DNA from: Neoconidiobolus thromboides FSU 785 | Taxonomy: Eukaryota; Fungi; Entomophthoromycota | Reading direction: 5' to 3' | NCBI GenBank assembly: GCA_025603075.1 | Contig: MU626376.1 | Coordinates: 495 to 64,494, forward strand | Length of the DNA stretch: 64,000 nt | Shown: positions 1 to 64,000 of the stretch, in pieces | How the letters are laid out: each line of letters starts with the position of its first letter | Numbering within the stretch: position 1 is the stretch's first letter | Notes under the pieces: generated by a model | Databases searched by the model: none | The model's input: only the letters and a program-made list of their open reading frames with translations | What the model was told of the DNA's origin: nothing | Translations under genes and position numbers: made by a program

Positions 1-947
1 CTAATGAATTTTTAAACACGCCGACTTTACTAGTAAAATTAATGCTATTTGATATTCAAACCAAGGTGGTAAAGACAATTTATCAACCACCTGAAAGATT
101 TTGTATAAAGCAGCTTTTTGTTGATAACAATCAATTTTATTTTCTTAAAAGACAGCTTAAGTTAGAGTATTATATGAATTAGATTTAACAAACTATAAAA
201 TAAAAAATAGAATTGATTTTAAATATGGTATAGGTTTTTCTATTATAAAATTTGATAAATCAGTTTATTTTATTTTGAAAGACAGTAAAGTTCAAGTCAA
301 TATTTATGAGTTCTGTTCCAATTTAAACAATTAAACGCTATAGTTGCATTAAATAATGGAGGATGCTTTACTGCTTATAATGATTATTTGATAAAAACTC
401 GTTTGGTTATACTTTAATTAATATAAATAATCCTAATCATTCATCTAATAATAAATCATCTAAACTTATTTTTGATGTACTCTTTCAAGGGTCAAATGCC
501 AATACAGATATTTCATATCACTAGTTGGGACTAAATAAGCGGTATGTTGGCATTGACTATTAATATAAATATAAATACAAGTAAGAATAAGAACAAAGAT
601 AAGGAGATAAATAAAACAGGTTATAAGAACAATGATAGCTTGTTGATTGGAGGAATTGTGGGAGGAATAAGTAAAGTTATTTTAATTTCAATAGCTGTAT
701 TACCCACATTATATAAATATCAAATAAAGAGAGACCTCTAAGTATGATTACTGAGCCTGTACATATTGAGTCAATCAATCCACTAGATGTTAACGATGAT
801 CATTATAGTACTGAAATGTTTTCTTACTCATAAAAGATTAATGATAGCATCACTATACTACCTATGAAAACGTACGTCAAAGCTGCAAGAAATATAAATT
901 TAATCAACCACGAGAATATGACTGGTAAATGTAAGGATATTAATTAA
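1..947 (+). pseudogene. Decayed Kelch-like type I membrane protein, family copy 1 (5' end cut by window edge)
   Basis: Frameshifted translation gives PTLLVKLMLFDIQTKVVKTIYQP..QLFVDNNQFYF, a TM segment GGIVGGISKVILISIAVL and a tail ITEPVHIESINPLDVNDDHYSTEMFSYS*KINDSITILPMKTYVKAA. All align by eye to the intact ORF at 57556-58986. Internal stops and frameshifts are present. Confidence 0.85.
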
Positions 948-8710: not shown

Positions 8711-8764
8711 AACACAGTTTTTAGCTTAAAAAAATCATATATATTTTTATTAGTAACTTATTTT

Positions 8765-10166
8765 ATGAAGCTAATGAAGTATTGTCAAGAGTATTTGGTG
8801 GCAGATGTGGTGTATTGTAGTAGGAGGTGATTTGTATTAATTTGGTGAATATATAACCATTTCGAATTTAAATATATATAATAGGGAAATGTTTAAGATT
8901 TAAAAAAAGGAGTGAAATTAGTTGATAATACTATAGAATGGACTGTATATAATACAACTAATTTATCAAACCTTGTTCGCTTTTCATATGGAATTTTCTA
9001 TAAAGAATAAAACGTTGATGGTTTTTAACAATATTCATAGTGCAAATGTAAAGTATAATCAATTTAATATCAAAAAAAATGAGTGGGGAGCGAATATGCA
9101 ATCAAGAAGGTCTATGAATTTGATTTTTCACCTAATTATGAAAAAGATAGGGTTAGTGACTATGTTTATTATAACATTTTATAGAGTGAGAAAAATTAAA
9201 GAAGACTTTGCATTACTAACAAATTTTATTCAGCAGCATTTCCAACAAAAATAGTATCATTTGATATTCAAACTGAAGAAGTGAAAACAATCTATCAACC
9301 AAAAAGAGCCAATTCCATGATATTGCTATTTAGCAATAACAATAAAGTATATTATTTTAAAAACGTACCAGGGTTGGCTTCATATGCCATTATCGATATA
9401 TTATATGAATTGGATTTGACAACTTATAAAATAGACAAGTATAATACTAAATCCAGTAATCATACCAGCTTATCTATTGTAAAATTTAGTGGTTCGGTAT
9501 ATTTCATCCTTGATGGTGATAGTGTCTAAACTGAGATTTGTGCGTTTCAATTTCCATTATTAAAATTTAAACAATCAAACATAAAACTTTTAATTAAAAA
9601 TGAAAGACGTCTTCTAAATATAACAACTATTTGGTAAATTCATCTGGCTCTATTCGACTTAATCAAAGCATTTTTGATAATACAAAAGATTCTACCAGAT
9701 ATAGAGGAACTGAAGATGAGATCTCAAATAAAGTCCAAGCGTTTGGTGTGAATACTTTCGAGGAAGTAGGCGGTATACCTCCGTTAAATAACAGTAATAT
9801 TGGTAATAGTATATAAATTAAAGGAATAGGTAATGTTCGAAATAATAGTATTTCGACAATTGGGGGTATCTTAGGGGGGATCATTTCAATTAGAGCGGTC
9901 GTGTTATTTGTATCATATAAACACAAATCAAAGAAAAGACCTTCAAGTTATACTATTGATCATATTGTTATCGATCCAATCAATTGTTAGATGCTAATAG
10001 TGATTATTACAATACTGCAATATTCAGCCATTCACAAGAAATTGACAAAGCTACTTCTATGTTATCTATAAAAGCGCTCATCAAAGCTTTAAGAGATGTA
10101 AATATAGATAAAACAAAACAAAATAAAACTGAACTGTTATTAAATTACATTTTATTTTTGTGCTAA
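8765..10166 (+). pseudogene. Decayed Kelch-like type I membrane protein, family copy 2
   Basis: Fragments SRVFGGRC..IVVGGDLY, DLKKGVKLVDNTIEW, NNNKVYYFKN, TM GGILGGIISIRAVVLFVSY and tail YYNTAIFSHSQEIDKATSMLSIKALIKA match the intact copy. Multiple stops and frameshifts; track ORFs 9281-9529, 9631-9816 and 9984-10166 are pieces of it. Confidence 0.85.
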
Positions 10167-17700: not shown

Positions 17701-18412
17701 CAGCATTAATTGATTCATTATCCAAAGCAAAACCACCTTCATAACGAATTTTGCCTACCAAAGCTTCTGGATGGACAAAATTTTTAATATTATAAATAAC
17801 CCCATTGATACTTACCATCTCTTTAGTTAGTGTTTTATAAGCCATCTTATTTGTATTTGTATCACCACAAAGAACAGCTTCTAGTGCAAATGTTAAGAAA
17901 CCAAGTGCACCTGAAATTACTACAATAATAAATACTAAACTAATTTTTTCTCTCCATGCTTGTTGTACTTGTCGATTTTTCATACCACACCATTTTAATA
18001 AAAAGGGTGGGAAACAACATGTTACGAGCCAAGAAAATAAGGTCCAAGCTCCGATGGCTTTAGAGCGTTCCCTATCTATCATACGCGATTTTTTTCTAGC
18101 TAAATTCGGATGCCTAGAAGAATTACTTGATACCCATCGTCGAAGCTTAGTTCCGCTTTCTGGTCCATTCGAATCTCTTCTTGCTCTACTTCTTCCTGAT
18201 GCTTTTCTAGAAGGTGTGGCATCTTGTTTCTTTGGCCGAGGTCGAAATGTTTCCCTTTCATTAGGCATGGTTCTTAACTCTAAACTTTGAGGTGATAGTC
18301 CATCCCTATTTGTTAAATCGGTATCAAAATGAAGTGTATCCGCAGAATTAATTAAGCTATTGTTGACTTCATTTGAACCTATATTGACATCTTTTTTTTC
18401 GCTGCTCTTCAT
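14756..18412 (-). CDS. CHS3: Chitin synthase, division 2, class IV (Chs3-like), 1218 aa
   Basis: GT2 motifs DADT, CLPGCF, LGEDRYL and LSQRRRWINST; N-terminal TM pair and cytochrome-b5-like region; no myosin motor. The symbol reflects class similarity, not proven orthology. Confidence 0.95.
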   Translation of the reverse strand: MKSSEKKDVNIGSNEVNNSLINSADTLHFDTDLTNRDGLSPQSLELRTMPNERETFRPRPKKQDATPSRKASGRSRARRDSNGPESGTKLRRWVSSNSSRHPNLARKKSRMIDRERSKAIGAWTLFSWLVTCCFPPFLLKWCGMKNRQVQQAWREKISLVFIIVVISGALGFLTFALEAVLCGDTNTNKMAYKTLTKEMVSINGVIYNIKNFVHPEALVGKIRYEGGFALDNESINAGTKDLSFLFQALTRQNPGSCKDILFFEGSNNDEPQRYFPCLPIDPFSSAPIQGSNSDGSCHFSVNHKESLSKLKKVGNVFFTWKEVEDKNNGLVVYGGNVIDLNRLKWLTGTVAMSSFVADLRREDRPYLGKDVSYFLLNEDPSVGKCLIDILRVGMIDTSTIGCLTSSAIQYIILIVIVAVVISKFFMAIFFSWIVSWRLGSLNERTYQDKLKRYDQMEAWAEDREDSSVTESDTSLPVELTTDFTPINNTSSRMGTGQVPSARNSSNCLSTPRGIGIHSHEGEMKSRGSFNYDRPPIFVPPGIDSDLGFALHYTISLVTCYSEGFSGIKATLDSLANTNYPNNRQLLFVICDGLITGAGNEKSTPDICLSLMKDFVIPPDMVQPYSYVAIAEGSKRHNMAKVYAGYYYQTNKKKGDANEKTDSPSKNRVPMVLIVKCGTPEEANGPKPGNRGKRDSQVILMSFLQKAIFDDRMSELEYELFNGFWNVSGVTPDVYETVLMVDADTVVAPDSITRMVACFSRDPKVMGLCGETKIANKSQSWVTAIQVFEYYISHHLSKAFESIFGGVTCLPGCFSMYRIKAPKSNGDWVPVLCNPEILQQYSENVVISLHQKNLLLLGEDRYLTTLMLRTFPKRKLIFVPQAVCKTIVPDSFFVLLSQRRRWINSTVHNLLELVITRDLCGTFCFSMQFIVFMELIGTIVLPSAICFTIYLLVRAFLAPNPPTIPLVILALILGLPAILIVLTTRQIGYIFWMFIYLLALPIWNFILPIYSFWHFDDFSWGQTRMIAGGDKSGHGSNEGEFDSSNIVMKRWEEFEREKRRRTVAVLSQYGTQVSLPSTVRNEPYKYGNSSKNLLNVPEAANSKYTLDSQNSNHPGNLDNMGYMSPIALRRVSKVVAAEEEINSILADNYSPGMGEHMVLCDQNGQVSLPWRSMGSLGNPRASTSALNVSRLSLANNGSNRDILRHSIFDPTYNGSTPKH

Positions 18413-20065: not shown

Positions 20066-21391
20066 TTACTCATTTCCTTGCTCCACTTTGATCCAGTTTA
20101 ACATAGGCATGTTTATTATTAAATCGTAAAACTCTTTACTTAATGGCACATTATAGGGTAGAATAAGTAATAAGGGATCAGTAAACTCACAATCAATGTT
20201 GATATTGGAATTTTCAAGTAAATTAAACTGTTTGATATGAATTTTTTCTAAGTTTGGGAATAAAGATAGAAAACAAAAAAATTGTAAGGGAGTAAAGGAA
20301 ATAGCATTAACATTAATTTGTTTAATAAATGAGCATTGAATTGGAAAAGGTTCATTGTTTTTTAAACATAATATACAATTAGAAATAATAGAATCTATAT
20401 TGAGAAATAAAGAATCAAAAGTAAGTATTTGTATATTTGATAATCTACTAATTTCATCTAATAATAAGGATGATAACCTTTTCATACTAATCTCCCTTAA
20501 ATTGGTTAATCTTAACATCTTAATATTATCTGAATCTTCTAGAAAACTAAATGAGCCTAATTTAATAATAGTATTACCTTGCTTTAATAATATATTCATA
20601 TTGCTTTCGTTATTTAATTTAAAAAGTGAACTTGAAAGATCATTTAATTTAATATTATTTAATTTACTTAAATTACCAAAACAATTAATATTAAAATCAT
20701 TATCAAAATAACCTTCAATTATTAACTTTAAGTTTGAATTGAAATTAAGTTTGGAATCAAATTCAATAGAGGTTATTATACTTCCTTTGCTTTTTAAATG
20801 TAATAATTTTAACTTATTAAATTCTCTTTTAATTATATCTAATCCATCTACATATATATCATAACTGAAATTTAATTTAAAACTCTCTAACTTCTCCGGA
20901 TTTAGATAATTAATAAAACTTGTAATATCGCCATTGACTGTTTGAAGTTCAAATTGTTCAATTTGATTTAAATACTTACTAATTGGTTTGAAAATTTTAT
21001 TATAATCTCTATTTAAACTATAAATACTTAATCTCTTTAACTTTAATAAATCAATTTCTAATTTATTATTGATATTCTCATCATAGCAAACATAGTAAAA
21101 AATAGATTCAATATTAGGACAATAATTCAAGTAATCTATATTATCACTTGATATGTTTATGTGCTTCATTAGGTTTCCATTACACTTTATATATTCTTGT
21201 TGTAAATTGGAATATGCTTTATATTTATCGTCGTTATAAATTGATAATTTCAAATTGAAATCAATTACTTTATATATAGTTTGATAGAAATGTTTATTTA
21301 AAAAACAATATTGAAAGAGTTCAACTGGATTAATTAATTGGAATACATCGACTAATAATTCATCAGGTAAGTGTTCTAATTTTATAGTCAT
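20066..21391 (-). CDS. F-box protein with LRR-like/RNI-like C-terminus (441 aa)
   Basis: N-terminal LEHLPDELLVDVFQLI..L..C.LNK F-box pattern and recurring LxxLxL motifs (LKLKRLSI, LKLLHL, LREISM, LEKIHI). Confidence 0.8.
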   Translation of the reverse strand: MTIKLEHLPDELLVDVFQLINPVELFQYCFLNKHFYQTIYKVIDFNLKLSIYNDDKYKAYSNLQQEYIKCNGNLMKHINISSDNIDYLNYCPNIESIFYYVCYDENINNKLEIDLLKLKRLSIYSLNRDYNKIFKPISKYLNQIEQFELQTVNGDITSFINYLNPEKLESFKLNFSYDIYVDGLDIIKREFNKLKLLHLKSKGSIITSIEFDSKLNFNSNLKLIIEGYFDNDFNINCFGNLSKLNNIKLNDLSSSLFKLNNESNMNILLKQGNTIIKLGSFSFLEDSDNIKMLRLTNLREISMKRLSSLLLDEISRLSNIQILTFDSLFLNIDSIISNCILCLKNNEPFPIQCSFIKQINVNAISFTPLQFFCFLSLFPNLEKIHIKQFNLLENSNINIDCEFTDPLLLILPYNVPLSKEFYDLIINMPMLNWIKVEQGNE

Positions 21392-21952: not shown

Positions 21953-23080
21953 TTAATTTATTTCATTTACTAAACCAAGGTTAACATTGGGAATAAAATA
22001 CACTGGTAACATTAAACATAAACTTAAAAGTAAAGAATAAAGTAAAAACCTAAGTTTAAATGTGCAACTTAAACTAGGAATATGAACATTATCCACGGAC
22101 TCATATGGATCTTTAAATATGGAACATTGGCCATTAATTTGACATGTTTTATTATTAGCGGTATGATTTAATAAATAACGATAAAATGGATCTTTACCCC
22201 ATTGAGAAATAGGGGAGGATGGTACAGGTGCTTTTTCAGATGGTGTCATAGTAACTTGTGATTTTTCATCTGAACAACAAGCTTCATTCTTGTTATTAGA
22301 ACAATTTCGACTGGTATGCTTAAATTGATTAACTAATTGAATTGGACAAGAACTAACTACAGTTATAAAGGGTAATAGGTTAGCTAAAAATAATAAAGGT
22401 AAAATAACTAATCGAATTAATGGATCAAGTTGAAATAAGATGAAATTAATTAACATAATAATAATTATTATATATAATAAAATACTTGGAGATAATCTTT
22501 TGACAGTACCACATTGACATTTTAACTTGGAATTATGTAATAGGAATTTAGAATAAGATTGAGATAATATTTCATAACAATGATTAGCAATTGGACTTAA
22601 ACGTTCTGGATTAGTTTCTAAGTAATTATTTAATAAGACTCCTTTCTTTATTGAATAAGCTAAATTCAATTCCATTGGTGCATTAGGTACTAAAAACAGG
22701 TTTAAAATGTCTTGTAATTCATCACAAAATGGAGAAGTTTGTTTACAAAATTGAACTAATTGATCTTCAATGACGATATTATTAGTATTAATAGTAAGTT
22801 GATTTGGGATTAAGTTCTTATCACCTATTGGAATTAAACTCAATATTGAGTTGGGTAAATTACTTGCATCGACTAAAATCTTATATTGCTTGTGATATTG
22901 CTTTTGATTATATCGAATCAAATAGTTATCATACCAAAATAAGAACTCTAAGTTTTCTAAAGTATGTTCATAATAAAATAAATAGTTTCGAAAGTCATGT
23001 AAGGAATAAGGTGGTAAACTGGAATTACTCAAGATATCTTCTAAGCTGGGTTTAGAACTAAATAATTTATTGAAAAACAT
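21953..23080 (-). CDS. RGS-domain protein with C-terminal transmembrane helices (375 aa)
   Basis: SLEDILSNSSLPPYSLHDFRNYLFYYEHTLENLEFLFWYDNY matches the fungal RGS N-terminal pattern; hydrophobic segments follow near residues 200-240 and at the C-terminus. Confidence 0.8.
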   Translation of the reverse strand: MFFNKLFSSKPSLEDILSNSSLPPYSLHDFRNYLFYYEHTLENLEFLFWYDNYLIRYNQKQYHKQYKILVDASNLPNSILSLIPIGDKNLIPNQLTINTNNIVIEDQLVQFCKQTSPFCDELQDILNLFLVPNAPMELNLAYSIKKGVLLNNYLETNPERLSPIANHCYEILSQSYSKFLLHNSKLKCQCGTVKRLSPSILLYIIIIIMLINFILFQLDPLIRLVILPLLFLANLLPFITVVSSCPIQLVNQFKHTSRNCSNNKNEACCSDEKSQVTMTPSEKAPVPSSPISQWGKDPFYRYLLNHTANNKTCQINGQCSIFKDPYESVDNVHIPSLSCTFKLRFLLYSLLLSLCLMLPVYFIPNVNLGLVNEIN

Positions 23081-39417: not shown

Positions 39418-40122
39418 ATGAAATTCGTTAGCTTATTCTTTGTGATCTTTGTCGACTCCTTCTTACAGATTGTAACCTCCCAGATGATTACTCAATGTAC
39501 TCAAAATGGTGTATTTGCTTTAACTTTTGATGATGGTGTAACTCAATATAGCGAACAGATGCTAGATATCTTAAAAGAAAAAGGCGTTAAGGCTACTTTC
39601 TTTTATATTGGTTCTAACTTAGAATCCGATAAACAGAAAAAAACAGCTAAACGTGCTTTTGATGAAGGTCATCAGATTGCTTCCCACACTTGGAGTCATC
39701 CTGAGTTATCAAAATTATCTGCTGGAAAAGTAAAAGAAGAAATGCAAAAAACAGAGGATAATATTGAGGAAGCTATTGGAAAGAAAGTCCGATATATGAG
39801 AAATCCATTTTTAGATTCTAGTGAAGCAGTTGATAATATCTTAAGAGGGATGGATTATATTCAAGTTGGCGTTAATTTAGATACCTTTGATTGGAAAGTG
39901 AAAGATATTGACCCAGATAGAATTTTCTCAATAATTGATGATACTATGAAAACAGTCGATGTTAATACTCAATCATTTATCTCTCTACAACATGATTTAA
40001 CGGACCCTAAAGTAGCTAAAATTAGCGAAATCATTGATTTAGTTCGTTCTAAAAACTTTAGATTTGTTACTTCGGAAGAATGTTTGGACAAAGGACCTGC
40101 TTATAGAGATTTTTTTACTTAG
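39418..40122 (+). CDS. Secreted CE4/NodB polysaccharide (chitin) deacetylase, paralog 1 (234 aa)
   Basis: Signal peptide; all five CE4 motifs: TFDD, HTWSH, RNPF, DTFDW and LQH. Confidence 0.92.
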   Translation: MKFVSLFFVIFVDSFLQIVTSQMITQCTQNGVFALTFDDGVTQYSEQMLDILKEKGVKATFFYIGSNLESDKQKKTAKRAFDEGHQIASHTWSHPELSKLSAGKVKEEMQKTEDNIEEAIGKKVRYMRNPFLDSSEAVDNILRGMDYIQVGVNLDTFDWKVKDIDPDRIFSIIDDTMKTVDVNTQSFISLQHDLTDPKVAKISEIIDLVRSKNFRFVTSEECLDKGPAYRDFFT

Positions 40123-43589: not shown

Positions 43590-44585
43590 ATGAAGTTCTT
43601 TACTATTACTCCTGTATTACTCATTAGTTCTATCTTCCAATCCATTAGTTCACAGTCTATTTCCAAATGTACCCAAAATGGTGTATTTGCTTTAACTTTT
43701 GATGATGGTGTTACAGACTATACTGGTGAAATGTTGGATATATTGAAGGTGAAAGGTGTTAAAGCTACTTTTTTCTATATTGGTTCTAACCTTGAATCTG
43801 AGGATCACAAAGTGATTGCTAAACGTGCTTTTGATGAAGGCCACCAAATCGCTTCTCATACTTGGACCCATCCTTCACTCACTTCTTTATCTCCTGAAGA
43901 AGTAAAAAATGAAATGAAAAAGACCGAAGACGTCCTTGAGAAAACTATTGGAAAGAAAGTGAGATATATGAGAAGCCCATACCTTGCATCTAATGATGCA
44001 GTAAATGCTTTATTGAAAGGAATGGATTATGTTCAAGTTGGAGTTAATTTAGATAGTAACGACTGGAAACATAGAGATACTGCACCACAAAAGATTTTTG
44101 ACGCTTTCAAAGATGCTATGAATGCCCCAGGAGTTGAATCCCAATCTTTTATCTCTTTACAACATGACTTGACTAACCCTTCAGTAGCTAAAATTGGAGA
44201 AATCATTGATTTAGTTCGTTCTAAAAATTTCAGGTTTGTTACTGTCGAAGAATGTTTAAGAAAGGGCCCAGCCTATAGGGATTCCCAAGCTACTCCATCT
44301 ATTACATCTACTCCATCCAGTACATCTACTCCATCCAGTACATCTACTCCATCCAGTACATCTACTACATCCAGTACATCTACTCCATCCAGTACATCTA
44401 CTCCATCCAGTACATCTACTCCATCCAGTACATCTCTATCCAGTACATCTACTCCATCCAGTACATCTACTCAATCTGTTCCTTTAAACCAAGGTAAACC
44501 CCAAGGTGAAAAATATGAAGTTATTACACCAAAACCTCATGGTTCTCGTAAATGTAAACCTACCTCTATTCCAAAACGTAATTAA
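43590..44585 (+). CDS. Secreted CE4/NodB polysaccharide (chitin) deacetylase, paralog 2, with S/T/P stalk (331 aa)
   Basis: Signal peptide; TFDD, HTWTH, RSPY, DSNDW and LQH motifs; catalytic domain closely similar to paralog 1; TPSSTS repeats; basic C-terminus. Confidence 0.93.
   Translation: MKFFTITPVLLISSIFQSISSQSISKCTQNGVFALTFDDGVTDYTGEMLDILKVKGVKATFFYIGSNLESEDHKVIAKRAFDEGHQIASHTWTHPSLTSLSPEEVKNEMKKTEDVLEKTIGKKVRYMRSPYLASNDAVNALLKGMDYVQVGVNLDSNDWKHRDTAPQKIFDAFKDAMNAPGVESQSFISLQHDLTNPSVAKIGEIIDLVRSKNFRFVTVEECLRKGPAYRDSQATPSITSTPSSTSTPSSTSTPSSTSTTSSTSTPSSTSTPSSTSTPSSTSLSSTSTPSSTSTQSVPLNQGKPQGEKYEVITPKPHGSRKCKPTSIPKRN
44292..44471 (+). repeat. Coding minisatellite, 18-bp unit ACTCCATCCAGTACATCT x~10 (TPSSTS)
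   Basis: About ten near-identical units, one shortened to 15 bp so the frame is preserved. Confidence 0.95.
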
Positions 44586-52722: not shown

Positions 52723-54309
52723 ATGATTGTAATATAGAAGTAAATCAGTTATTTTCTTAAGAAACTTGAAGGAACAACTCTAAATGCTTTATTAACGGAG
52801 GAAAAAAAGATATTAGTCTGATTGATAACCAGATCAAGTAGAGATGGTAAAGTTAAGGAAAAAGAGAAATCAAACAATTCCCAAAAAATTCTAATCCAGT
52901 TTTACTAGGTTTAATTTCAATAGATCGTACTTAATGACTTGAACTTACATTTTGTATAAAGAAATCCGAAGATAGGATAGTGTGAGGAGGCATTGGATGA
53001 TATAATTTGATATTAATTGGAAGTATTATGGATATTTAATATATAAGGTGCATGTCAATAGGCATAAAAAAGGTTTGGTGTAAGGACAAGCATGATAGAA
53101 ATGCCAGGCGCAGCTAATCGAGGTCAGTCAAGGATATGTATTATAACCAATTGTTTTTTCAATAATATTTTATAATTTACCCTTGCTTTCTCCAAGTGGT
53201 TTTCCTGGATCTAATTTTAACTATTAAATTCAAATACCATAATATCTAAAAGCATTTATAATGAATACAAATGTAATATACAATTCTTTTAGTAAAATAA
53301 ACTATCTCAAAGTTGACATGCAGATTTTCTTACTTAAAATTCAGATAATGGTTGTTACATTTTGAGCTGTTTAAAAGGAAATATGCAATGTAAAATAGCT
53401 TTTGTAGTAGGATTAATATTTTTCAATAGGTAATTTTTAGAGGAAAAGGCAGTGGATTCAATTTAAAAAAAAAACAAGCTTACATGTTTGGAGAAAATTT
53501 ATTAAAGTTAATCTTTTATAAGATCCAAGAGGAACAATATGTCTAGTTTAAAGCAATCAGTTTTCTTTTTTTTCCTGAAAAGCTATTGGGTAGTAAAACT
53601 ATTTGGCACTAATAGTTCTCTTACTCCTTTATCAGGCTTTCTGGAAATACCAGCGGAAAGGAAGCCCTGACTAGGAAGCCCAGTTCTCCGCTTCTTGCCT
53701 TCTAATTCTTGTGTTCATTCTTTACTAGCAAAGGATTTGAGGATTTCGACCTTTTTAAAGGTTTTTAAAAAGAGTACCAAATGCCCAATAAAAGTAAAAT
53801 CCTAATTATAAGAAAACAAAGGCAAAGTTCTTTAACCAAAATAGAGCTACAGGTTTAACTCTTACATGTTTGGCTTATAATTGCTATATCAACTATTGTA
53901 TATTGCCATAGTATTTGATATTGGTACAAATTTTATATTTTTGTTTGCCACTTATTATTTTCTATAAACTTTTAAAAGCAGATTATTTAAATAATTTAAA
54001 AAACATATGTGATAAACTTACTTTTGTTTATAGTTCAAATTTCAAAGACTGTAGAAGAGGAGTAATTTGATGTTTCTGGTTCATGAAACAAATAAATTCA
54101 AATCTAATCCATTCTTTCCAATTTAATCCCTTTAACTATGCTACTCCACAAGCTCCAACTAGCAACTATTTTTATTGTTAAAGATGATAACTGTGGCCAC
54201 ATGGTCATTTAAAAAATATCCAAACTTTACATGAGAAGACAATCTCAATCCTTTTTATTTTTATTGTGTTGACTTTTTATTTTTTGTTAATTTATTACTC
54301 TGTAGAGTT

Positions 54310-55550
54310 AATGTGATAATTCTAAGATTATTTGTTGGTGGACGCATCGGTAGTGGAAGACAAATTGTATTATTTAGGTGGTTATATTTGAATACCGAAT
54401 ATAGTTATAGATGAAGAAAATAAATAGCTTTTAAATTAGATTTTAAAAAAGGGGTAAAGTTAATTAATAGTGCTATGGAATGGGAGGCGCACAAAATGAT
54501 TCATTAAGGTTCCTCGAGCCGTATACCAATATGATATATATACCAAATGATACAGTCGTGCATTTTCATAGTAATACTTTAAATGAAATCCTAAACTTTG
54601 ATTGATATTGAAAAGAAGGAATAGTATGGCGAATCTCTCATCAAAAGTTTATTCAGGAATATAACATATCTGGCTCAGAAATAAAAGATACATAATACAC
54701 TTAACACATTGGTATTTTATAAGGTAACGAGAATTTAAATAAATTCTATATTGCTAATGAAATACAGCTGTCATAACTTTTATCAACAAAATCGATATCA
54801 TTTGACATTCAAACCAAAGCGAAAACAATTTGTCAATCAAAAAAAGGTCACATATAAAATAACTTCATAATAATAAATTGTATTTTTTGAAAAGTCAGGT
54901 AACTTAAGATTAGGATTCAACGATAAAGTATTGTATGAGTTAAATTTAACATAATGTAAAATAAAAAGATATGAAACTGGTTTTACAGAATGTCCTTATA
55001 TATCAATCCCAAAACGGAATCATTCTGCTTATTTTAATTCAGATGGCGATGATGCTGAAGCTGAAATTTATAAGTTTTCCTTTCAATCTTTTGATTTTGA
55101 ACAAACAAACCAGTAATATCAGGTAGTTGTGGACGTGTTACTATTTATAAAAATCATTCGATAAATTCATTTAGCTACAATAGTATTGGCCTTTATAAAT
55201 TTATTAATGTAACAAGCAATATTGAGGATATATTTTTGTGTTTAAGAATTTTACTAATTTTCTACTTAAATAGCTCTTAAAAAACGGAAAAAATAATGAA
55301 GTTAAAAAAAATACTCCCATTGCTATTGAAATAAGGATAAATCAAAGCTCAAATAAAACTCAAGTATTTATATATATCAAATACTTGGAAACAATTAGAT
55401 GATATATCCCTATTAAATGATCATAACAACAGAAATACAAAAGTAATAGAAAATCCCATGGAAATGATAAATAGCAATAACACTAATTTACTAATAAGGA
55501 TATTGTAGGTCGAATAGATGGAGTAATTTTAATAACAGCTAGTATAGTAT
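54310..55550 (+). pseudogene. Decayed Kelch-like type I membrane protein, family copy 3
   Basis: Fragments VVEDKLYYLGGY, LDFKKGVKLINSAMEWEA, KSISFDIQTKAKTI, SAYFNSDGDDAEAEIYKFSFQ and a TM remnant; a MITE is inserted at 55221. Confidence 0.8.
55221..55320 (+). mobile_element. MITE family A copy inside pseudogene copy 3
   Basis: ATTGAGGATATATTTTTGTG...AAAAATACTCCCAT. Confidence 0.85.
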
Positions 55551-55695
55551 TATAATATATGAATTTAAATTTAAAAAAGAAAGGTTCCTAAACTTTATTA
55601 TTGATCTCTGATTTATATAAGTAAAGAAAGATAATATTACATTATTTCTAAAATAATTTTATTTTATATTAAATTCTATTGTTAAACATTAATTA

Positions 55696-55798
55696 TTTGG
55701 ATGTGTTTTTATATTTAAAATTTTTACTAACAATTTTTCCGCTCAAATAATGCTTAAAAGATAGAAAAAGTAATGAAGCCATAAAAAACAACTCCAAA
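55696..55798 (+). mobile_element. MITE family A copy (degenerate)
   Basis: GGATGTGTTTTTATATTTAAAATTTTTACTAAC...GAAGCCATAAAAAACAACTCCA. Confidence 0.8.
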
Positions 55799-55974
55799 TA
55801 TTTTTTAGTATTAAATATTACAAAAGTTTAATCTTCATGTTTAATATTAACTGAAAGCCTATTTGAAAGCTTAAAAATTGGTTTAAAACAGATGGAATAA
55901 ATATTTTTAAAAAAATAGTAAATAAAAATTGCAGTGTTATTTGAATTATGTTGCTTTTTCTTTATTTACATCTG

Positions 55975-57377
55975 GGGCTTTTAAAACTTCAACACTTATT
56001 TCTATCGGTAGGATCTTAATGATATCACTGATCTCTCGCGAATAACTGAATGTTTCAGTATTATAATAGTTACTGTTAGTACCTTATATATTAATTAGTT
56101 TTATATGAATTGGATCAATAAGAAAGCTTGGGGGCCTTTTCTTCTTAATTTATACTTGTATACTATAAATATAATGACCAACACTATTAGAATTACGCCT
56201 ATTATTCTTCCTGTAACATCTTCTATTGATCAGTTACTGCTATTGTTATTTATAGTGCGAGTAGGGTTATCTTTTACTTTTATCTTTTTATCTTCATTTT
56301 TATTTAATGAAGACATATTATCTAACTGCTCTCAGCTAGTTAAATTATAAATATAAACTCAATTTGAACCCTTCAAAAGGTGCCTAGGACGAAAGGTACT
56401 TATCATGTTATCATACCCTTGATTATTAGTTAGGTAGTAATCCAGAGAGCTTATTGAATAATCCTTGTAGGTAGTCAAATATCAAATTTTTTAAAGAAAA
56501 TCGTACTATTTAATTGTCTAAAAGTTGATGCTTGAAACTAAAACTTGTAAACGTCACTGTGAGCACTACTCCTGGTATATATAATAATATAAGCTGAATG
56601 ATTGTATTTTATTGTATAAAGGATTCTGATTCCCGTGAAATTAATTTTATAGATTTGCACTTTACATGGTATTGAATTCAATTCATATAATAGCAGCTAT
56701 ACATTATTAATTAGACCTAAAAAATTTCTTGATCTTTCATAAAAGTATAGCTTATTATCATTAATGGATTGCTGGTCAATAAAGTAAGCTGTGTTTGATT
56801 CATAAATTGCCTTCATTTCTTTAGTTTCGATATTGAATGATATTAATTTTGATGGGAAAATTGATGAATCATATACAAGTAAAATGAAATTTATTTAAGT
56901 TATATTCGTCTTGCAAAATATTGAACATGCTAGTACTCTTTAAAGTCCTTTTTTCAGAAATTGGCATATTATACTTATAATAAAATCCATTAGTAGTGCA
57001 TTTACCATACCATTCTTTCCTTTCAATATCAAAACGACTGTATGCTAACACTGGACCCGAACTATATCGAGAAAAGTGTAATAATGTTTTATTTTCAACA
57101 GAAAACAATTTGCTTCCTGAGTTATGAGACTCTAACGGGTTTGTTGTATTACATACTCCCCTTTCCGTAGTATTGATAACTAACTTTATTCCTTTGTTTA
57201 AATCTAACTTAAACAATTCTTTATTGTGTTCTTATATACTTACATTCGGTATATCAATAAACTCTTGTGAATATTATAGTTCATTTTTACTATAATACAA
57301 TTACCATCCCGTGCTCTCGGTATTGTCATATTGGTTCCATAAAATAAAAGATCAGTAAAAAACAAAATTAAAAACAT
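55975..57377 (-). pseudogene. Full-length decayed Kelch-like type I membrane protein, family copy 4
   Basis: MFLILFFTDLLFYGTNMTIPRARDGNCIIVKNEL*, LFKLDLNKGIKLV, YSRFDIERKEWY, IYNLTS*EQ, TM IIGVILIVLVIIFIVYKYKLRRK and tail NYYNTETFSYSREI; several stops and frameshifts. Confidence 0.88.
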
Positions 57378-57555
57378 AGAAAAAGGTAAGATGCCAATTA
57401 GAATCTAAAGAGCATTTCTAGCAATTGGGTACCTCAGGAGTTATTTCAGCCTATTTTATTACATTGATTTAAAGTCAACTTGAAAATTTATTAAAACTAA
57501 TTTAACAGAAATGCTAGAGATAAAAATGCCAACATCATTAAAATTATTAACTTGC

Positions 57556-58986
57556 TTATTCTTTATTTCCATCCGTTGCTGCTGAAGCTTTGATATATGT
57601 TTTTATACGCAACATTGTAATAGCTTCATCGATTTCTTGTGAATGGCTAAAAATTTCTGTATTATAATAATTATTTTGGACATCTGATAGGTCAATCGGT
57701 TCAATAAAAATAGGATCGATAATAAAACTTGGAGGTTTATTTTTTCTTAATTTGTGTTTGTATACTATAAATACTATAACTGCTGTTATTAATATTACTA
57801 AGCCTATTCCACTTAAAGTTCCTCTAATTAGCATGCTGGTATTATCATTATCACTTATGACGCCTATATAATCCTTTTTACTGGTTTCTTTTATCTCATT
57901 GACTTCGCTTTTCTTTGAAGGTATGCCCTGTACTTGTTCCCAACTAGTTAAATTGTAAATTTGAACTTTATTTGAACTTTCTAAAGAATAGTCATGAGGA
58001 TGTGTATTTATATTATTTTTACCAGCGTACGTGCTAATTTTATAATAACCAAGAGAGCTTATCAAATAGTTTTTATAAGTGGTAAAACACTCTTGACCAT
58101 TAAATAGAACTGTTTTACTTACTTGTTTAAACTCCGATGATTGAAAATCAAACTTATGAATTTCAGCTGTGGAATTACCACCAGGATTCAAAATAAAATA
58201 AGCAGAATCATTGGATTTTATTACTGATAATCTCAAATGTTTTAAAAAGTCCATTTTGTGTTTTTGTATCTTACGTGATGATAAATCTAATTCGTTTAAT
58301 ATCTTGATGTCACTAAATGTATTTGTAGATTCTCTTGATCGTTCAAAAAAGTATAATTTATTATTATTAACAAACTGTTGATATATTGAATAGCCTTTAT
58401 TTGATTCATGAATTGTTTTCATTTCTTTAGTTTTGATATCAAATGATATTAACTTTGTTGGTAGAGTTGGCAGATAAAATACATTAGTAATATAAAACTT
58501 ATTTAAATTGTGTTCATCTTGTAACACATTAAAGTGGGGATCATAGTCAATGGATTTTTTTTTAGAAATAGATATATTGTATTCATGGTAAAATTCATTA
58601 ATATAATATTCATCAAACCAATCTTTGTTTTCAATATTAAAGCTATTGTAAGATAATGCTGGTTCTGATCTGTATCCATCAAAGTGAACTAATATTTTAT
58701 CTCCAATATAAAACATCTTAGTTAATGGATACCGAAAGTCCGGTGAATTTGTCATATTATATGCCTCCCATTCTGCGATGTTAACAGCTAGCTTTACCCC
58801 TTCTTTTAAATTCAACTTAAACAACTGTTTGTTATATTCTAATACATCTATATTCGGGATATAAGTCATCCCACCTAAATAATACAATTCATCCTCTACC
58901 ACAATACATTTACCACCATCTACTCTTGGTGCTATTCCATTAGTTCTATAAAACAAAAGACTAACAAAAAACAAAAACAAAGACAT
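57556..58986 (-). CDS. Kelch-like beta-propeller type I membrane protein, intact family copy 5 (476 aa from first ATG)
   Basis: Signal peptide MSLFLFFVSLLFYRTNG; Kelch-like blade PRVDGGKCIVVEDELYYLGG plus degenerate blades; TM GTLSGIGLVILITAVIVFIVY; basic KHKLRKNK; 67-aa cytosolic tail. The track start at 59040 is a TTG. The fold assignment is inferred from motif resemblance. Confidence 0.8.
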   Translation of the reverse strand: MSLFLFFVSLLFYRTNGIAPRVDGGKCIVVEDELYYLGGMTYIPNIDVLEYNKQLFKLNLKEGVKLAVNIAEWEAYNMTNSPDFRYPLTKMFYIGDKILVHFDGYRSEPALSYNSFNIENKDWFDEYYINEFYHEYNISISKKKSIDYDPHFNVLQDEHNLNKFYITNVFYLPTLPTKLISFDIKTKEMKTIHESNKGYSIYQQFVNNNKLYFFERSRESTNTFSDIKILNELDLSSRKIQKHKMDFLKHLRLSVIKSNDSAYFILNPGGNSTAEIHKFDFQSSEFKQVSKTVLFNGQECFTTYKNYLISSLGYYKISTYAGKNNINTHPHDYSLESSNKVQIYNLTSWEQVQGIPSKKSEVNEIKETSKKDYIGVISDNDNTSMLIRGTLSGIGLVILITAVIVFIVYKHKLRKNKPPSFIIDPIFIEPIDLSDVQNNYYNTEIFSHSQEIDEAITMLRIKTYIKASAATDGNKE

Positions 58987-59216
58987 GGTTAAAAAAACTA
59001 TCTTAATAACTGTTTTTGTTTTGGGAAATGTAAAATCCAATTAGAATCCGCAGAATATTTTTAGCAATTAAATATTTGAAATACTATTGCAACACATTTT
59101 ATCATATATTTTAGGCCAATTTAAAAATAGATTAAAAGTTATTTAGTGTAATTGCTATTTGGCAATCAATTATTATAGTTTGAATGATAAATTTACTTTC
59201 TTTTTATCCTTACATT

Positions 59217-61100
59217 TCATAGATTCTTATCGTGTGTTTCTATCGATAGTATGGTAATAACATTGCTAATCTCTTGAATGATCAAAAATTCCAGTACTAT
59301 TATAATAATTATTGGTATCCAATAGATTAATTGATTCTATATAAGTAGATTTAATAATAAAACTTGGAGATCTTTTTTTCTTTAACTTATGTTTATAATT
59401 AACTGATACAATAACTACTGTTACTATAGTAACACTACTATTCTAATTATACTATCTCCAATTAATGAGCCAATATTTTCATCAATTATGTCGTTTATAG
59501 AACAATTCTTACTCATTAAAAATATATCATCTACTTGCTATCAATTAGTTAAATTGTACATTTAAACTCTATTTAAATTTTTAATAAGATCTTTATGTAA
59601 TTAGAACTATTTTTCATATTACTATACTCAAGTTGAGATCAGTTAAAAAAATTAAAAGAGTTTGTTAAATAATTCTTATAAGTAGCAAAGCATCACTTAC
59701 TATTGAACTAGATTGTTTTATTAGATGGCTTAAAGCCTAATAATCGAAATAAAAACTCATGGATTTTAGTTTGAATGCTATTATCATTATCAAAAGAAAA
59801 ATACCCAAAATGATTGGACTTTATTATTGGTAGTTCTAAATACCTCATAAAGTTAATATTGCATTCTTCTAATTTATGTGATATTAAATCTAATCAACAT
59901 GCTAATTTAATATCACTAACTGGTTTTGAAATATCGCTTGAAATTTCAAAATAGTACGTTTTGTTATCAGTGTTGTTTTTGAGTTTCATCACTGGAATGG
60001 CTTAGTTTTTCTGAAGTCTTCCGTTCTAGATGCTGCCTCTTATCCTTTGGTAACATAAATTCAATTACCTTGTGGTAGTATTTAATAGTCAATAAGATAA
60101 GTTTAAAAATAACAAAAGTAAGAATACTAAATGAGTTTTATTTATAATTGTTTGATATTTATTTGGTTAACTGAGTCAGATTTATATACATTCGGAGTGC
60201 CATGTGGCACCTAATTATAGGCTATAAAGAGTACTAAGCCTAATGTTCACAGTTATTTTCTCCTGGATCACCTTGATGAGTCCCTTGATGGTTTCTTTTT
60301 GTTGTGCTCTAGTTGATTGAATTTTAACTTCATTGTAATGATTAATTAAATTCACTTGATTTGCTGCAGGTTCTCACTTAATTTTAAGTCAATCGTAAAG
60401 GTAAATTTTATCATGTAGTAAAGACTGAAGATTTCTGGATTTCCATTTACCAGTCAGTAATCATTAAGAAATAGTTAATATATAGAGCTATTTTCATTTG
60501 GTTCATAAAATGTTTTTAATTCTTCATTTTCAATATTAGATAATATTAATATTGTTAATAAAGTTAATAAAGTTAATAAAGTTAATAAATAGATTACCGT
60601 AACAATATAAAATTGATTTAAATTGATTTTATCTTGTATAAAATTAGGGTATGTACCGTAATGAACCTGTTCTCTTTTAGAATTAGAGATTTCGTATTCA
60701 TGATAGAGTTCATTGGCAAAATAGATATCGTACCATCCTTTCTTTTCAATGTCAAAACAGCTATAAACTAATATTGGCTCTGGGCTATATCAATAGAATA
60801 AATTGTTGGATCATTTCCAATTAAAAAAGATTGGTATATGGGTCACAAAAATCAAGAGGGTTTTTCATATTGTATTACTTCCATTCAAGAGTATCAACAA
60901 TCAACTTTATTCCCTTTTTTAAATCTAACTTAAACAATCGCTTATTTTCTTTAGATAAGTTTACATTTGGCATGTAAGACATTGACCTAAAATAGTTTAA
61001 TTCATCTTTCACTATGATATAACTATTATTATCTAGCCTTAGTACCATAATATCAAGCTTACAAAATATAATACTAATAAAAAATATGTATAAGGACGTG
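59217..61100 (-). pseudogene. Decayed Kelch-like type I membrane protein, family copy 6, split by an insertion
   Basis: IIVKDELNYF..LFKLDLKKGIKLIVDTLEW, YSCFDIEKKGWYD, KTYYFEIS..SDIK..LDL, a TM remnant and YKHKLKKK; contains a (AATAAAGTT)x4 expansion at ~60557-60590. Confidence 0.85.
59971..60456. mobile_element. ~486-bp TG...CA insertion in pseudogene copy 6
   Basis: Removing it rejoins LFLND(Y/N)|KTYYFE, homologous to FVNNNKLYFFE; flanks GTTATCAG and GTAATCAT match at 6 of 8 positions. Confidence 0.55.
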
Positions 61101-61616
61101 TTTATAAAAACAGTTCTCAAACATTAAAAAGTATTTATTTCAAAAACTAAAGCTCTGATTAGAGCCTACAGAGTGTTTATGAAATTTGTGGCATTTGGTT
61201 TTTTTAATAATAAAGAATGTAATAAACAAAAGATTATAACTCATCAAGCTCTGATTTATAAAGTGTATTTCAAAATAAATCAATTATTGGCATCATATTT
61301 TGACACTACTGAAATCATTAAGCTGACTTTTGTTTATCTTCAACCATGGGTTTTGAAAGTTTGATATGGGCTTCTATAGGTATTATGGGAACAAAACCAC
61401 CAGTTTCTTGTAAATAGTTGAATATATTGGTATTATACTAATCAATATAAGGATCTAATGGGTCTATTAGTTTAATAAAAATAGGCTCAGTGATAAAACT
61501 AGAAAGCCTTTCTTTCTTTAAGTTGTATTTATAATCCATAAAAAGTATAACCTATGTTATTAAAATTGCGCCTCCAATTCCTCTTACAGTATCTTCAATT
61601 AATGAATTATTATTAT

Positions 61617-62118
61617 TGTGAAATATCGCTTCGTCAGTCCCATGGTTAATTATTTTGATTTGTTATGAGAATTTCTAGTTCCACCCAAAAGAATATGGGG
61701 ATGTATTTTTGTATTTAAGAATTTTACTAACAATTTTTCCACATAAATAGCGCTTAAAAAATGGAAAAATAATGAAACTAAAAAAAACAGCCCCATATTA
61801 TCTTCTCATTTTGATACTTATACTTTTCAGAGTATAAAAGAGTTTACAGAGTATAATAGTTCGAGGCTTTTTAACTGAATTAATCCCTGATATCTCGAAC
61901 ATTTAATAAAGCCACTAAGTTTTCTTAATAGTATTTTACATAGATTTTACATTAGTATTCTCTATTCTATTTGTCTTATATAGCTTGTAACCTATTACGT
62001 GCTATTCCTCATAATGCAAGTCTATCTTAGTCACATAAACTAAGACCTTTGGACTTATAGTGTAGTCAACCCAGCAATAGCTGTTCTTGACTCCAAACCC
62101 TGAGTACCAGATTTCACA
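61617..62118. mobile_element. Solo LTR, family L copy 2, with 5-bp TSD (ATTAT)
   Basis: TGTGAAAT...ATTTCACA termini; ATTAT directly on both sides (61612-61616 and 62119-62123); interrupts pseudogene copy 7; carries a nested MITE. Confidence 0.88.
61695..61796 (+). mobile_element. MITE family A copy nested in solo LTR
   Basis: ATGGGGATGTATTTTTGTATTTAAG...AAAACAGCCCCAT; absent from the homologous position of the 46.3-kb LTR copy. Confidence 0.92.
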
Positions 62119-63776
62119 ATTATTACTATTATTTATAATATTCATATGATCCTTATCATTAGTCTCTTTTAACTTCTTATCTTGATTTTTGTTTAATGAA
62201 GCTGTACCATCTACCTGTTCCCAACTAGTCAAATTATAAATATAAACTCTATTTGGGCTTTTAAGAAGTAGCTTAGGAAGCGAGTTTTTCACTATATCAC
62301 TATACCTAGGTCTAGTGATAATATAAAAACCAAGAAAATCTATCAAAAAGTTCTTATAAATAATAAAACATTTAAGTCCATGAAGCAAAAATGTATAATT
62401 TAATTGGCTAAAAGTTGATGTTTGAAATTGAAGCTTGTGAATGTCACTTTGAGAAGTGTTTCCAGTGTAAGAATAAAATAAACTGATCAATTGACTTTGT
62501 AAAACAAAAATCTCTCATAAAGCTAGTATTATAATTTTGTATTTTATGAGAAGTTGAGTCAAATTCGTAAAAAACCATTCATTACTGATTGGCTTTGAGG
62601 CTTTTCTCAATCTTTTGAGAAAATATAACTTATTATCACTAATAAATTGTCAATCTATAAAATTCCCTAAATATGGCTCATAAGTTGGTTCTATTTCTCT
62701 AATTCAGATACTGAATGACATTAAGTTAGGTGCCAAATTTGGAAATTTAGGTGTTAATACTATAAAATCCAAATTCTTTTCATCTTATAAAATGTTAAAC
62801 AAAGTAACCCGTGAAAACTCTTTTTTAGAAAAATGTGTATTACAAATATAATAAATTTTACTAATATCATATTCATCATATTACTCCTTCCTTTCAATAT
62901 TAAAATATCTGCATGAAAATTCTTTTCTCAATTGTTTCAATCAAAATAGACTAATATTTTGTCTCCAATGTAAAATAAAATTTTAAAATCTAATGAATTT
63001 GCCATATTGTATTCCTTCCATTCTACGGTATTGTCAATTGATTTTATCACTTTTTTAAATCTAGTTTAAACGGTTATTTATTTTATATTAATATATTTAA
63101 GTTTGGCATAGAAGTTGCTCCACTCAAATAATATAATTCATCTTCTACTATAGTATATTTATATTTTTAGCATTTTGAAAATCATCAAAATACTAAACAA
63201 AGTTAAAGTAAAAAAACTAATTGGATTTAGTTATAAATATAAAAGCAAATTAGTAAAAAATCATACTCTGGTTCTGAACAGCTGTCGTGTTTTTCAATAT
63301 TTCTATATCAAGTTTAATTTATTAATAAAAAGTATAACTAAGCTAATATATGTGTCGATATTATAATTCTAAAAATTGTTTGCAGCTAAAGCTTGTTTTT
63401 ATGTTACTTTTTATAAACTGCACAGAAACTTAAAGTTTGAATTAATTTCTAAGTAAATTCTGAAACCAATCCGAACAACCCCATATAATTTTAGGAGTAA
63501 AGAGCATTAATCATTATAGCTGTTTAAATTAAGCATGCACTAATTAGCGATGATTTCTATAACTGGCTTCTGAATCATTACGCTGACTCGAAGCTTAATG
63601 CTTAAATGTTTATTTTTAACTGAATAGATAACTAGTGCATACTTAAACTTAAACAGTTGTAAAACAATGAATTAGATTTAGTTAGAAAACTAATTAAATT
63701 CAATTATTGTAAACAGTAATATATTAGCAGAGAATCAGCTTCTAATTAAGATCGTACTAAGTATTATAAGATATAT

Positions 63777-64000
63777 TGTGAAATCTGGTACTCAGGGTTT
63801 GGAGTCAAGAACAGCTATTACTGGGTTGACTACACTATAAGTCCAAAGGTCTTAGTTTATGTGACTAAGATAGACTTGCATTATGAGGAATAGCACGTAA
63901 TAGGTTACAAGCTATATAAGACAAATAGAATAGAGAATACTAATGTAAAATCTATGTAAAATACTATTAAGAAAACTTAGTGGCTTTATTAAATGTTCGA
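63777..64000. mobile_element. LTR family L copy 3 (cut by window end)
   Basis: Begins TGTGAAATCTGG; by eye it differs at one position from the reverse complement of the 61617-62118 copy over the visible 224 bp. Confidence 0.9.

Follow-up and report, generated by a model that had tools for sequence, protein, structure and literature searches.

A clustered and decaying family of predicted membrane-anchored Kelch-like propeller proteins in the fungus Neoconidiobolus thromboides

The gene copies and their surroundings

Neoconidiobolus thromboides is an entomophthoralean fungus (Zoopagomycota) that infects aphids. The stretch of DNA analysed here, hereafter the window, comprises 64,000 nucleotides of strain FSU 785 (positions 495–64494 of contig C119, the end of the window being also the end of the contig), has a G+C content of 25% and contains seven copies of a gene family encoding predicted type I membrane proteins with a Kelch-type beta-propeller. 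The copies were located by tblastn against the window with the protein of the one intact gene, copy E, and then with 23 intact paralogs, and their E-values of 1e-12 to 1e-64 are far beyond chance. Five of them lie within 9 kb, one on the plus strand and four in tandem on the minus strand, and two further copies are found close to the start of the window (Table 1). A preliminary description had placed seven copies at these sites and had taken E alone to be intact, and both sets of queries confirm it: E is the sole long open reading frame (ORF) in its region, and the other six copies are interrupted by multiple stops and frame changes.

The product of copy E is a protein of 476 amino acids which reads, from its N-terminus, as a cleavable-type signal peptide, a propeller, a low-complexity stalk modelled as disordered, one transmembrane helix and a tail of about 70 residues. 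Each of the six dead copies has three to five frame changes and at least four in-frame stops within well-aligned blocks, and several of these stops fall at positions where the paralogs keep a conserved Q, W or Y. The breaks are lesions and not introns, because each of the 23 open paralogs consists of one continuous ORF. Copy A extends upstream beyond the window (its match begins at C119:422), copy C is without its 3′ part, i.e. the last blade, the transmembrane helix and the tail, and copy D lies directly downstream of the intact gene. An origin of the stops resembling repeat-induced point mutation was considered and rejected as unsupported, as the stops align with Q, W, Y, L, E, S and other residues with no dominant class, and the pseudogenes, with a G+C content of 0.23–0.28, hardly differ from the intact gene (0.28). 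The intact protein nearest to each of the six dead copies is that of E or of its sister gene on contig C154, which points to an array that arose through local duplication. DNA identity among the window copies is about 63–82% (stated also as about 65–75% within the array) and the synonymous divergence (dS) amounts to about 0.7 between E and the intact gene most similar to it, and to 0.7–0.9 for the closest pairs; given these low identities and this dS, the duplications are old.

Parts of the stretch are held in five small public sequencing runs. In run X1 a single contig of 3046 nt, with a depth of 97 and no mismatch, spans 55910–58955 and so includes both gene E and pseudogene D, and three runs of a second study, made with a slightly different strain, give the same pattern, with depth highest over the 3′ half of E. 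Nothing covers 59086–61200, and no contig lies on copy F in the four runs that are probably of RNA. It is probable that the runs are transcriptomes rather than DNA, because this 2-kb hole common to four runs, together with the record size and total of X1 (15.5 Mb in 73,625 short records), fits them better. Pseudogene D is probably transcribed, and the contig that it shares with E suggests read-through or independent transcription of the dead copy. Where the runs cover them, the two strains differ at three positions in E (two synonymous changes and one A469G substitution) versus eight in D.

The protein of copy E is 100% identical to the NCBI hypothetical protein K502DRAFT_350759 (P0001) from residue 21 of that model onward. 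The public model splices an upstream exon onto position 58947 and so has 20 unrelated residues in place of the signal peptide. As the X1 contig is colinear with the genome for 9 nt beyond this splice acceptor, and as 22 of the 23 intact paralogs encode a hydrophobic N-terminus contiguously, the intronless ORF with its signal peptide is the better model for gene E. Similar problems affect other members: the sister gene has a public model (P0002) that begins 17 residues into the ORF, and P0008, P0010, P0011 and P0015–P0017 have been assembled from pseudogene pieces, P0011 from a piece of copy B. Standard annotation is thus blind to the family, since the window protein has no Pfam match, names are either ‘hypothetical protein’ or the misleading ‘galactose oxidase’, and models are truncated or mis-spliced; with their N-termini mis-modelled, both the window gene and its sister would be missed by secretome and membrane screens. 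The statement in the preliminary description that the family carries no recognised name therefore stands.

Mobile sequences have contributed to some of the decay in the window. The insert that splits copy G gave 3308 candidates in a first look at the genome, of which 40 were scored, mostly at 96–98% identity over about 300 bp, and the element, which may be a solo LTR (long terminal repeat), a SINE or a MITE, appears from such sequence comparison to be high-copy and young. Pieces 1–76 and 175–477 of the insert are contiguous in other genomic copies, so that in copy G a further unit of about 105 bp is nested within it; this unit resembles a miniature inverted-repeat transposable element (MITE) and has terminal inverted repeats (61687–61804). 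The same unit occurs alone at many genomic sites, and truncated copy C immediately precedes two MITE-like units of about 100 bp. The 491-bp insert in copy F (59969–60459) was considered as a mobile repeat and rejected, as it has no second match in the genome; it is single-copy and bears no similarity to the family. Of the MITE and long terminal repeat (LTR) insertions proposed earlier, those in copy G and after copy C are retained as a repeat with a nested MITE-like unit and as MITE-like units, and no insert was demonstrated to be an LTR element. At the far end of the window, part of the copy G repeat recurs as a perfect inverted copy whose second arm stops exactly at the contig end, where the assembly probably breaks within the abundant repeat of about 380 bp. 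Family copies are present at either end of contig C119.

The central part of the contig holds ordinary genes, for a chitin synthase, a SacI-domain protein, a coproporphyrinogen oxidase, a protein kinase and two polysaccharide deacetylases. The chitin synthase gene (14759–18412, minus strand; PF03142, 8.8e-267) lies between the two groups of Kelch-membrane copies, as do the two polysaccharide (chitin) deacetylase genes (39418–40119 and 43590–44582, both on the plus strand); either placing may be coincidence. Two adjacent ORFs share the minus strand at 20069–21391 (441 amino acids, weak F-box match, 7e-5) and 21956–23080 (375 amino acids, no Pfam match).

Table 1. Family copies, parts of the intact gene and repeats in the window. 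HSP, high-scoring segment pair; pLDDT, predicted local distance difference test score; residue numbers are those of the intact protein.
Feature	Position	Strand	Remarks
Copy A, pseudogene fragment, residues ~173–468	1..947 (tblastn 21–887)	+	Four HSPs in three frames, 4 stops
Copy B, near full-length pseudogene, residues 7–467	8746–10088	+	Frame changes, 11 stops at distinct places (8838–9814), summed E 2e-43
Copy C, heavily decayed pseudogene, residues ~4–330	54274–55220	+	Many stops, best HSPs in three frames
Two ~100-bp MITE-like units	55223–55320 and 55694–55797		Repeat families D7–D9, shared with 61694–61796
Copy D, full-length pseudogene, residues 1–476	55958–57377	-	Four frame changes, at least 9 stops, E 3e-64
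Copy E, intact gene, 476 codons plus stop, no intron	57556–58986 (tblastn 57559–58986, 100%, no stop)	-	
Copy E: predicted cytosolic tail, residues 409–476	57559–57762	-	5 K/R after the transmembrane helix versus 1 before
Copy E: transmembrane helix, residues ~386–408, glycine-zipper consensus LIGGIxGGIxGxILI	57763–57831	-	Hydropathy peak 390–408; AlphaFold2 helix 382–415
Copy E: low-complexity stalk, residues ~351–385	57832–57936	-	pLDDT <50; least conserved part, 20% over residues 361–380
Copy E: predicted six-bladed Kelch-type beta-propeller ectodomain, residues ~20–350	57937–58929	-	AlphaFold2, Foldseek; C27 and C300 conserved; 6 N-x-S/T sequons
Copy E: signal peptide, residues 1–17, MSLFLFFVSLLFYRTNG	58936–58986	-	Hydrophobic N-terminus in 22/23 intact paralogs; AlphaFold2 helix 2–18
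Copy F, pseudogene with frame changes, stops and 491-bp insert	59179–61096	-	
Copy G, pseudogene split by abundant repeat	61330–63160	-	
Insert in copy G, ~380-bp high-copy element with nested ~105-bp MITE-like unit	61621–62097, 477 bp		
Perfect inverted copy (226 nt) of 61895–62120, part of copy G repeat	63775–64000		Second arm stops exactly at contig end

A derived Kelch propeller on a membrane anchor

The preliminary description had proposed a degenerate Kelch-like propeller between the signal peptide and the transmembrane helix, followed by a cytosolic tail, and structure prediction, profile searches and topology all agree with this layout. An AlphaFold2 model built from the alignment of the 23 paralogs has a mean pLDDT of 76, with residues 20–350 mostly at 80–96, and its 25 modelled strands were grouped by hand into six four-stranded blades. 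The top Foldseek matches in the PDB are the Kelch domains of KLHDC10, NS1-BP, KLHDC2, LZTR1, KEAP1 and KLHLs (E 3e-10 to 1e-8, probability 1.00; template-modelling score by target 0.54–0.67), with some other propeller-type chains lower in the list. In the ESM Atlas every row carries Kelch families.

At the level of sequence the relationship is much harder to see. The window protein has no match to the Pfam Kelch models even at E-values up to 10, and its weak Pfam matches to Pol_BBD and BatA, which are below threshold and inside the propeller, were treated as chance. Among the 23 paralogs, the KLHDC2/KLHL20/DRC7 family PF24681 is matched by 14 (best 4.7e-25), the Attractin/LZTR1 propeller PF24981, the best-scoring Pfam family, by eight (best 1.2e-25), and the sugar-binding Kelch family of NanM, PF24996, by five (best 4.7e-11). 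A profile of all 23 matches LZTR1 (3e-15), KLHDC3 (2e-14) and, weakly, YjhT (6e-4). A tree separates a core clade of 11, which includes the window gene, from the more canonical Kelch-like paralogs; the core clade is barely detectable as Kelch, with PF24681 matched by three of 12 members and no Kelch structure in the PDB matched by its profile. The window protein is hence placed among Kelch proteins by its predicted fold and, at the level of sequence, through the less derived paralogs as intermediates.

The erosion can be followed blade by blade. The Kelch signature is clear in blade 1 only (LYYLGG, W73), with remnants at W123, FYI near residue 165, YYF near 212 and SxG near 313, and the GG doublets are mostly lost in the core clade. 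Across the 23 paralogs only C27, Y35, G39 and W123 are invariant. C27 belongs to blade 1 and C300, conserved in at least 90%, to blade 6; as a rule these are exactly the two cysteines of the ectodomain, and a disulfide between them could close the ring.

As one paralog (P0019) has the NCBI name ‘galactose oxidase’, and five to seven paralogs match the Pfam ‘Galactose oxidase, central domain’ (Kelch_3/Kelch_4), the proteins might be taken for membrane-bound copper-radical oxidases of the galactose or glyoxal oxidase type. These Pfam entries are repeat models, not enzyme models, and galactose oxidase has seven blades plus extra domains, against a model here that groups into six blades with Kelch domains as its top matches. 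Copper-radical oxidases of family AA5 further carry conserved copper ligands (two His, two Tyr and a Cys-Tyr cross-link) on their seven blades; over the 23 paralogs no histidine is conserved, and so there is no copper site. An oxidase role was accordingly rejected and is scarcely credible.

The remaining parts of the protein point to a type I membrane topology. A single transmembrane segment is present in 20 of the 23 paralogs, all but one of which also have a hydrophobic N-terminus, and these 20 carry three to eight K/R residues after the segment versus none to three before it, as well as one to ten N-x-S/T sequons. By prediction, then, the propeller is membrane-anchored and glycosylation-competent. 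The tail begins with a basic YKxKLKK stretch, continues with PPSxIxDPIxIxP, in which P425-I426 is invariant, and ends in an acidic YYNxxxFxHSHEID stretch. Taken alone, it has no relative among ESM Atlas features, and the resemblance of the transmembrane segment to APP C99 and syndecan, seen when the core profile was run against the PDB, was dismissed as being at chance level (E at least 0.05). The signal peptide, the cysteine pair, the transmembrane helix and the tail motif are all kept among paralogs that are only 17–55% identical.

This topology fits an internal membrane as well as it fits the cell surface. A doubtful alternative is that the proteins are lectin-like receptors for cargo or quality control, facing the lumen of the endoplasmic reticulum, Golgi or vacuole, with the tail as a sorting signal; the short tail with its conserved linear motifs resembles such signals, and the matches to the sugar-binding NanM family noted above would suit a lectin. 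Housekeeping sorting receptors, however, are normally conserved across fungi and present in low copy, unlike a family of about 58 loci that decays freely and was not found outside the species (see below), and no C-terminal signal of the KKxx or KDEL type is conserved, the C-termini being variable.

Expansion, decay and selection

The extent of the family was estimated by a six-frame search of the 24.6-Mb assembly, the matches being grouped into loci by hand; the counts are lower bounds. The 90 matches fall into about 58 loci, of which about 21 are full-length open ORFs, two or three are shorter ORFs that lack the transmembrane helix or tail, and about 35 are decayed. Loci are often clustered (contigs C154, C91, C355, C117, C131, C303 and C119) and often lie near contig ends. 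The lineage expansion with heavy pseudogenisation that had been read from the window thus extends to the whole genome.

A phmmer search of 1.84 billion representative proteins returned 19 matches only. Sixteen of these map to the DNA of this genome, 13 with 100% identity along all or nearly all of their length, and the other three (P0012, P0018 and P0020), which are only 41–54% identical to the loci compared, look like further copies of the family; all 19 are, by their sequences, consistent with paralogs of this genome. Three word-indexed searches for relatives outside the species, including ones with a profile and with a less derived paralog, gave only the fungus’s own paralogs or the weak Kelch proteins P0021–P0025, four of which are F-box/Kelch proteins (P0021 is a Kelch protein at 65 bits, covering 18% of the query), and a pattern scan of metagenomes found no relative. 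Neighbours by language-model features (0.92 and 0.81–0.84) are Kelch proteins of Mucoromycota and Ascomycota, of 370–550 amino acids. The family therefore has the marks of birth-and-death evolution, namely clustered paralogs, many pseudogenes and no orthologs elsewhere at single-sequence sensitivity.

Given that about 35 of some 58 loci are dead, that copies have mobile repeats or the ends of contigs as neighbours, and that even pseudogene D is apparently transcribed, so that transcription alone is no proof of function, the family could be evolutionary debris, amplified passively with repeat-rich regions, in which the open copies have merely not yet decayed. This is decidedly improbable: about 21 ORFs of about 1.4 kb have stayed open although stops are readily created at a G+C content of 25%, the same four elements of the architecture are kept across highly diverged paralogs, the covered parts of E differ less between strains than those of D, and ratios of non-synonymous to synonymous change (dN/dS, or omega) are 0.2–0.4 and not about 1.

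These ratios also bear on the opposite possibility, that of selection for variable ectodomains. Pairs of the 11 core paralogs are on average 37% identical in the ectodomain and 40% in the cytosolic part. Conservation is best in the first blade (residues 21–40, 63%), followed by residues 61–80, the juxtamembrane tail and residues 301–320 (about 45–49%), and poorest in residues 221–300 and the stalk. A Goldman–Yang codon model on a fixed tree gives omega values of 0.18 for the ectodomain (0.14–0.22 for its thirds), 0.18 for the stalk and 0.22 for the transmembrane helix plus tail; the tree is saturated, with about 23 substitutions per codon, so that absolute dN/dS is unreliable and only the comparison between partitions is meaningful. 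By the Nei–Gojobori method, the two least diverged pairs have omega values of 0.43 and 0.29 overall; in the pair of E and its C154 relative the middle blades reach 0.60 and the tail 0.26, and the second pair is flat at 0.26–0.30, every value being below 1. The surviving open copies thus evolve under purifying selection that is moderate and of similar strength in ectodomain and tail, with no sign in these sequences, at the scale of domains, of a variable ectodomain on a constant tail.

The preliminary description had contrasted a strongly diverged ectodomain with an alignable tail, and this contrast did not survive the comparison, the two parts being about equally conserved. It had also named uniform purifying selection, beforehand, as an outcome that would count against it, and the near-uniform ratios (0.18 versus 0.22) weaken the case for a diversifying receptor. 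The reading in question is that of a repertoire for host or non-self recognition, with ectodomains under positive selection and a constant signalling tail. A large, clustered and pseudogene-rich family in an insect pathogen would suit it, as would the excess of omega in the middle blades over the tail in the closest intact pair and the location of the most variable propeller stretch at residues 221–300. Yet across the family conservation is the same in ectodomain and tail, all partitions have an omega of about 0.2, the second close pair shows no such excess, no value reaches 1, and duplicates whose closest pairs have a dS of 0.7–0.9 are not those of a fast-churning family. We regard this reading as unlikely.

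Proposed role and comparison with known systems

The interpretation that we favour joins the anatomy and evolution of the family to a role at the cell surface. The family has grown by local duplication and turns over by ordinary decay, that is by point stops, frameshifts and the insertion of mobile repeats. Its propeller would face outward from the plasma membrane and bind a ligand, for which a glycan or protein from the fungus’s own wall, from the substrate or from the insect host is the most plausible candidate; the glycine zipper of the transmembrane helix could support oligomerisation, and the conserved tail motif could dock a cytosolic adaptor or other partner. The proteins may in this way act as surface sensors or adhesins, akin to the Wsc/Mid2 sensors or to attractin-type receptors but members of neither group. 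We are confident of the anatomy and evolution as described, and hold the sensor or adhesin function only tentatively, at somewhat less than even odds; for the full explanation, with both parts weighed jointly, we would put the probability at roughly 0.55.

Several points weigh against this interpretation. The localisation is a predicted one, and a luminal propeller of an internal compartment would have the same topology. The stalk, with its roughly 35 residues, could not span a fungal wall, and an outward ligand site would consequently be reachable only within the inner part of the wall or at stages that have a thin wall or none. Excess divergence of the ectodomain, of the kind seen in recognition repertoires, is absent from the paralog sequences. 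The restriction to one species is a result of single-sequence and word-indexed searches only, and the language-model neighbours indicate that distant kin with the same architecture may exist. The RNA type of the public runs is only a guess. Lastly, a literature search found no report of fungal Kelch type I membrane proteins or of this family.

A bolder version of the surface role is that the family constitutes a species-specific repertoire of plasma-membrane receptors or adhesins with which an entomophthoralean pathogen reads or binds insect surfaces or haemolymph components, and in which the propeller would have been re-invented as an extracellular recognition module with a private signalling tail (PPSxIxDPI). 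We consider this quite unlikely; if true, fungi would have here an equivalent of the surface-receptor families that have expanded in animals and plants. To our knowledge, insect-pathogenic fungi of early-diverging lineages have poor annotations, and next to nothing has been learnt of how they sense their hosts or attach to them. A sizeable family of predicted surface proteins, with about 21 open genes in a 24.6-Mb genome, offers concrete candidates for adhesion and sensing in N. thromboides, and it exemplifies a Kelch propeller that has drifted past sequence recognition while its fold stays. Should it be only an ordinary lineage-specific expansion without a role at the host, its value would be limited to better annotation.

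Considering the systems with which the family can be compared, the language-model neighbours in Mucoromycota and Ascomycota, from ESM Atlas clusters named ‘putative galactose oxidase’, ‘Kelch repeat protein’ and ‘cell wall anchored protein’, resemble it in length and Kelch Pfam content by these features alone. They were not reached by phmmer and are a lead only. The bacterial proteins NanM and YjhT are likewise six-bladed Kelch propellers, and it is the NanM family, PF24996, that five of the paralogs match; NanM, too, is located outside the cytoplasm, in the periplasm. Unlike the fungal family, these proteins are soluble enzymes (mutarotases).

Among animal type I receptors, Attractin and MEGF8 share with the family an extracellular Kelch propeller (here by prediction), a single transmembrane helix and a short conserved cytosolic tail. 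The family proteins are one third of their size and, on Pfam searches of the 23 paralogs, have no CUB, EGF, PSI or C-type lectin domains, their tail is unrelated, and they are known from one fungal species only in the searches run. Membership in the Attractin/MEGF8 family was rejected on the missing domains and the unrelated tail.

Closer to home, fungi possess type I sensors of the wall and surface, among them Wsc1-3, Mid2 and Msb2, and these have the same general plan of a signal peptide, a sensing module on a low-complexity stalk, one transmembrane helix and a short cytosolic tail, which in the family would serve to recruit a partner. The module differs, being a Kelch propeller in the family described here and a cysteine-rich WSC domain or a mucin rod in the known sensors; no Pfam match to the WSC domain occurs in the window protein or the 23 paralogs, and no sequence similarity to Wsc/Mid2-type sensors was found.

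The broadest comparison is with the Kelch superfamily itself (PF24681, KLHDC2/KLHL20/DRC7; PF24981, Attractin/LZTR1; PF01344, Kelch_1), with which the family shares six four-stranded blades and to which its less derived paralogs score as low as 1e-25. The window protein and most of the core clade differ in falling under every Pfam Kelch threshold, with the GG/Y/W motif clear only in blade 1, and in the predicted extracellular, transmembrane-anchored position of the propeller, most characterised Kelch proteins being cytosolic adaptors. The fold is thus a known one, and the protein is a strongly derived Kelch variant on a type I membrane scaffold.

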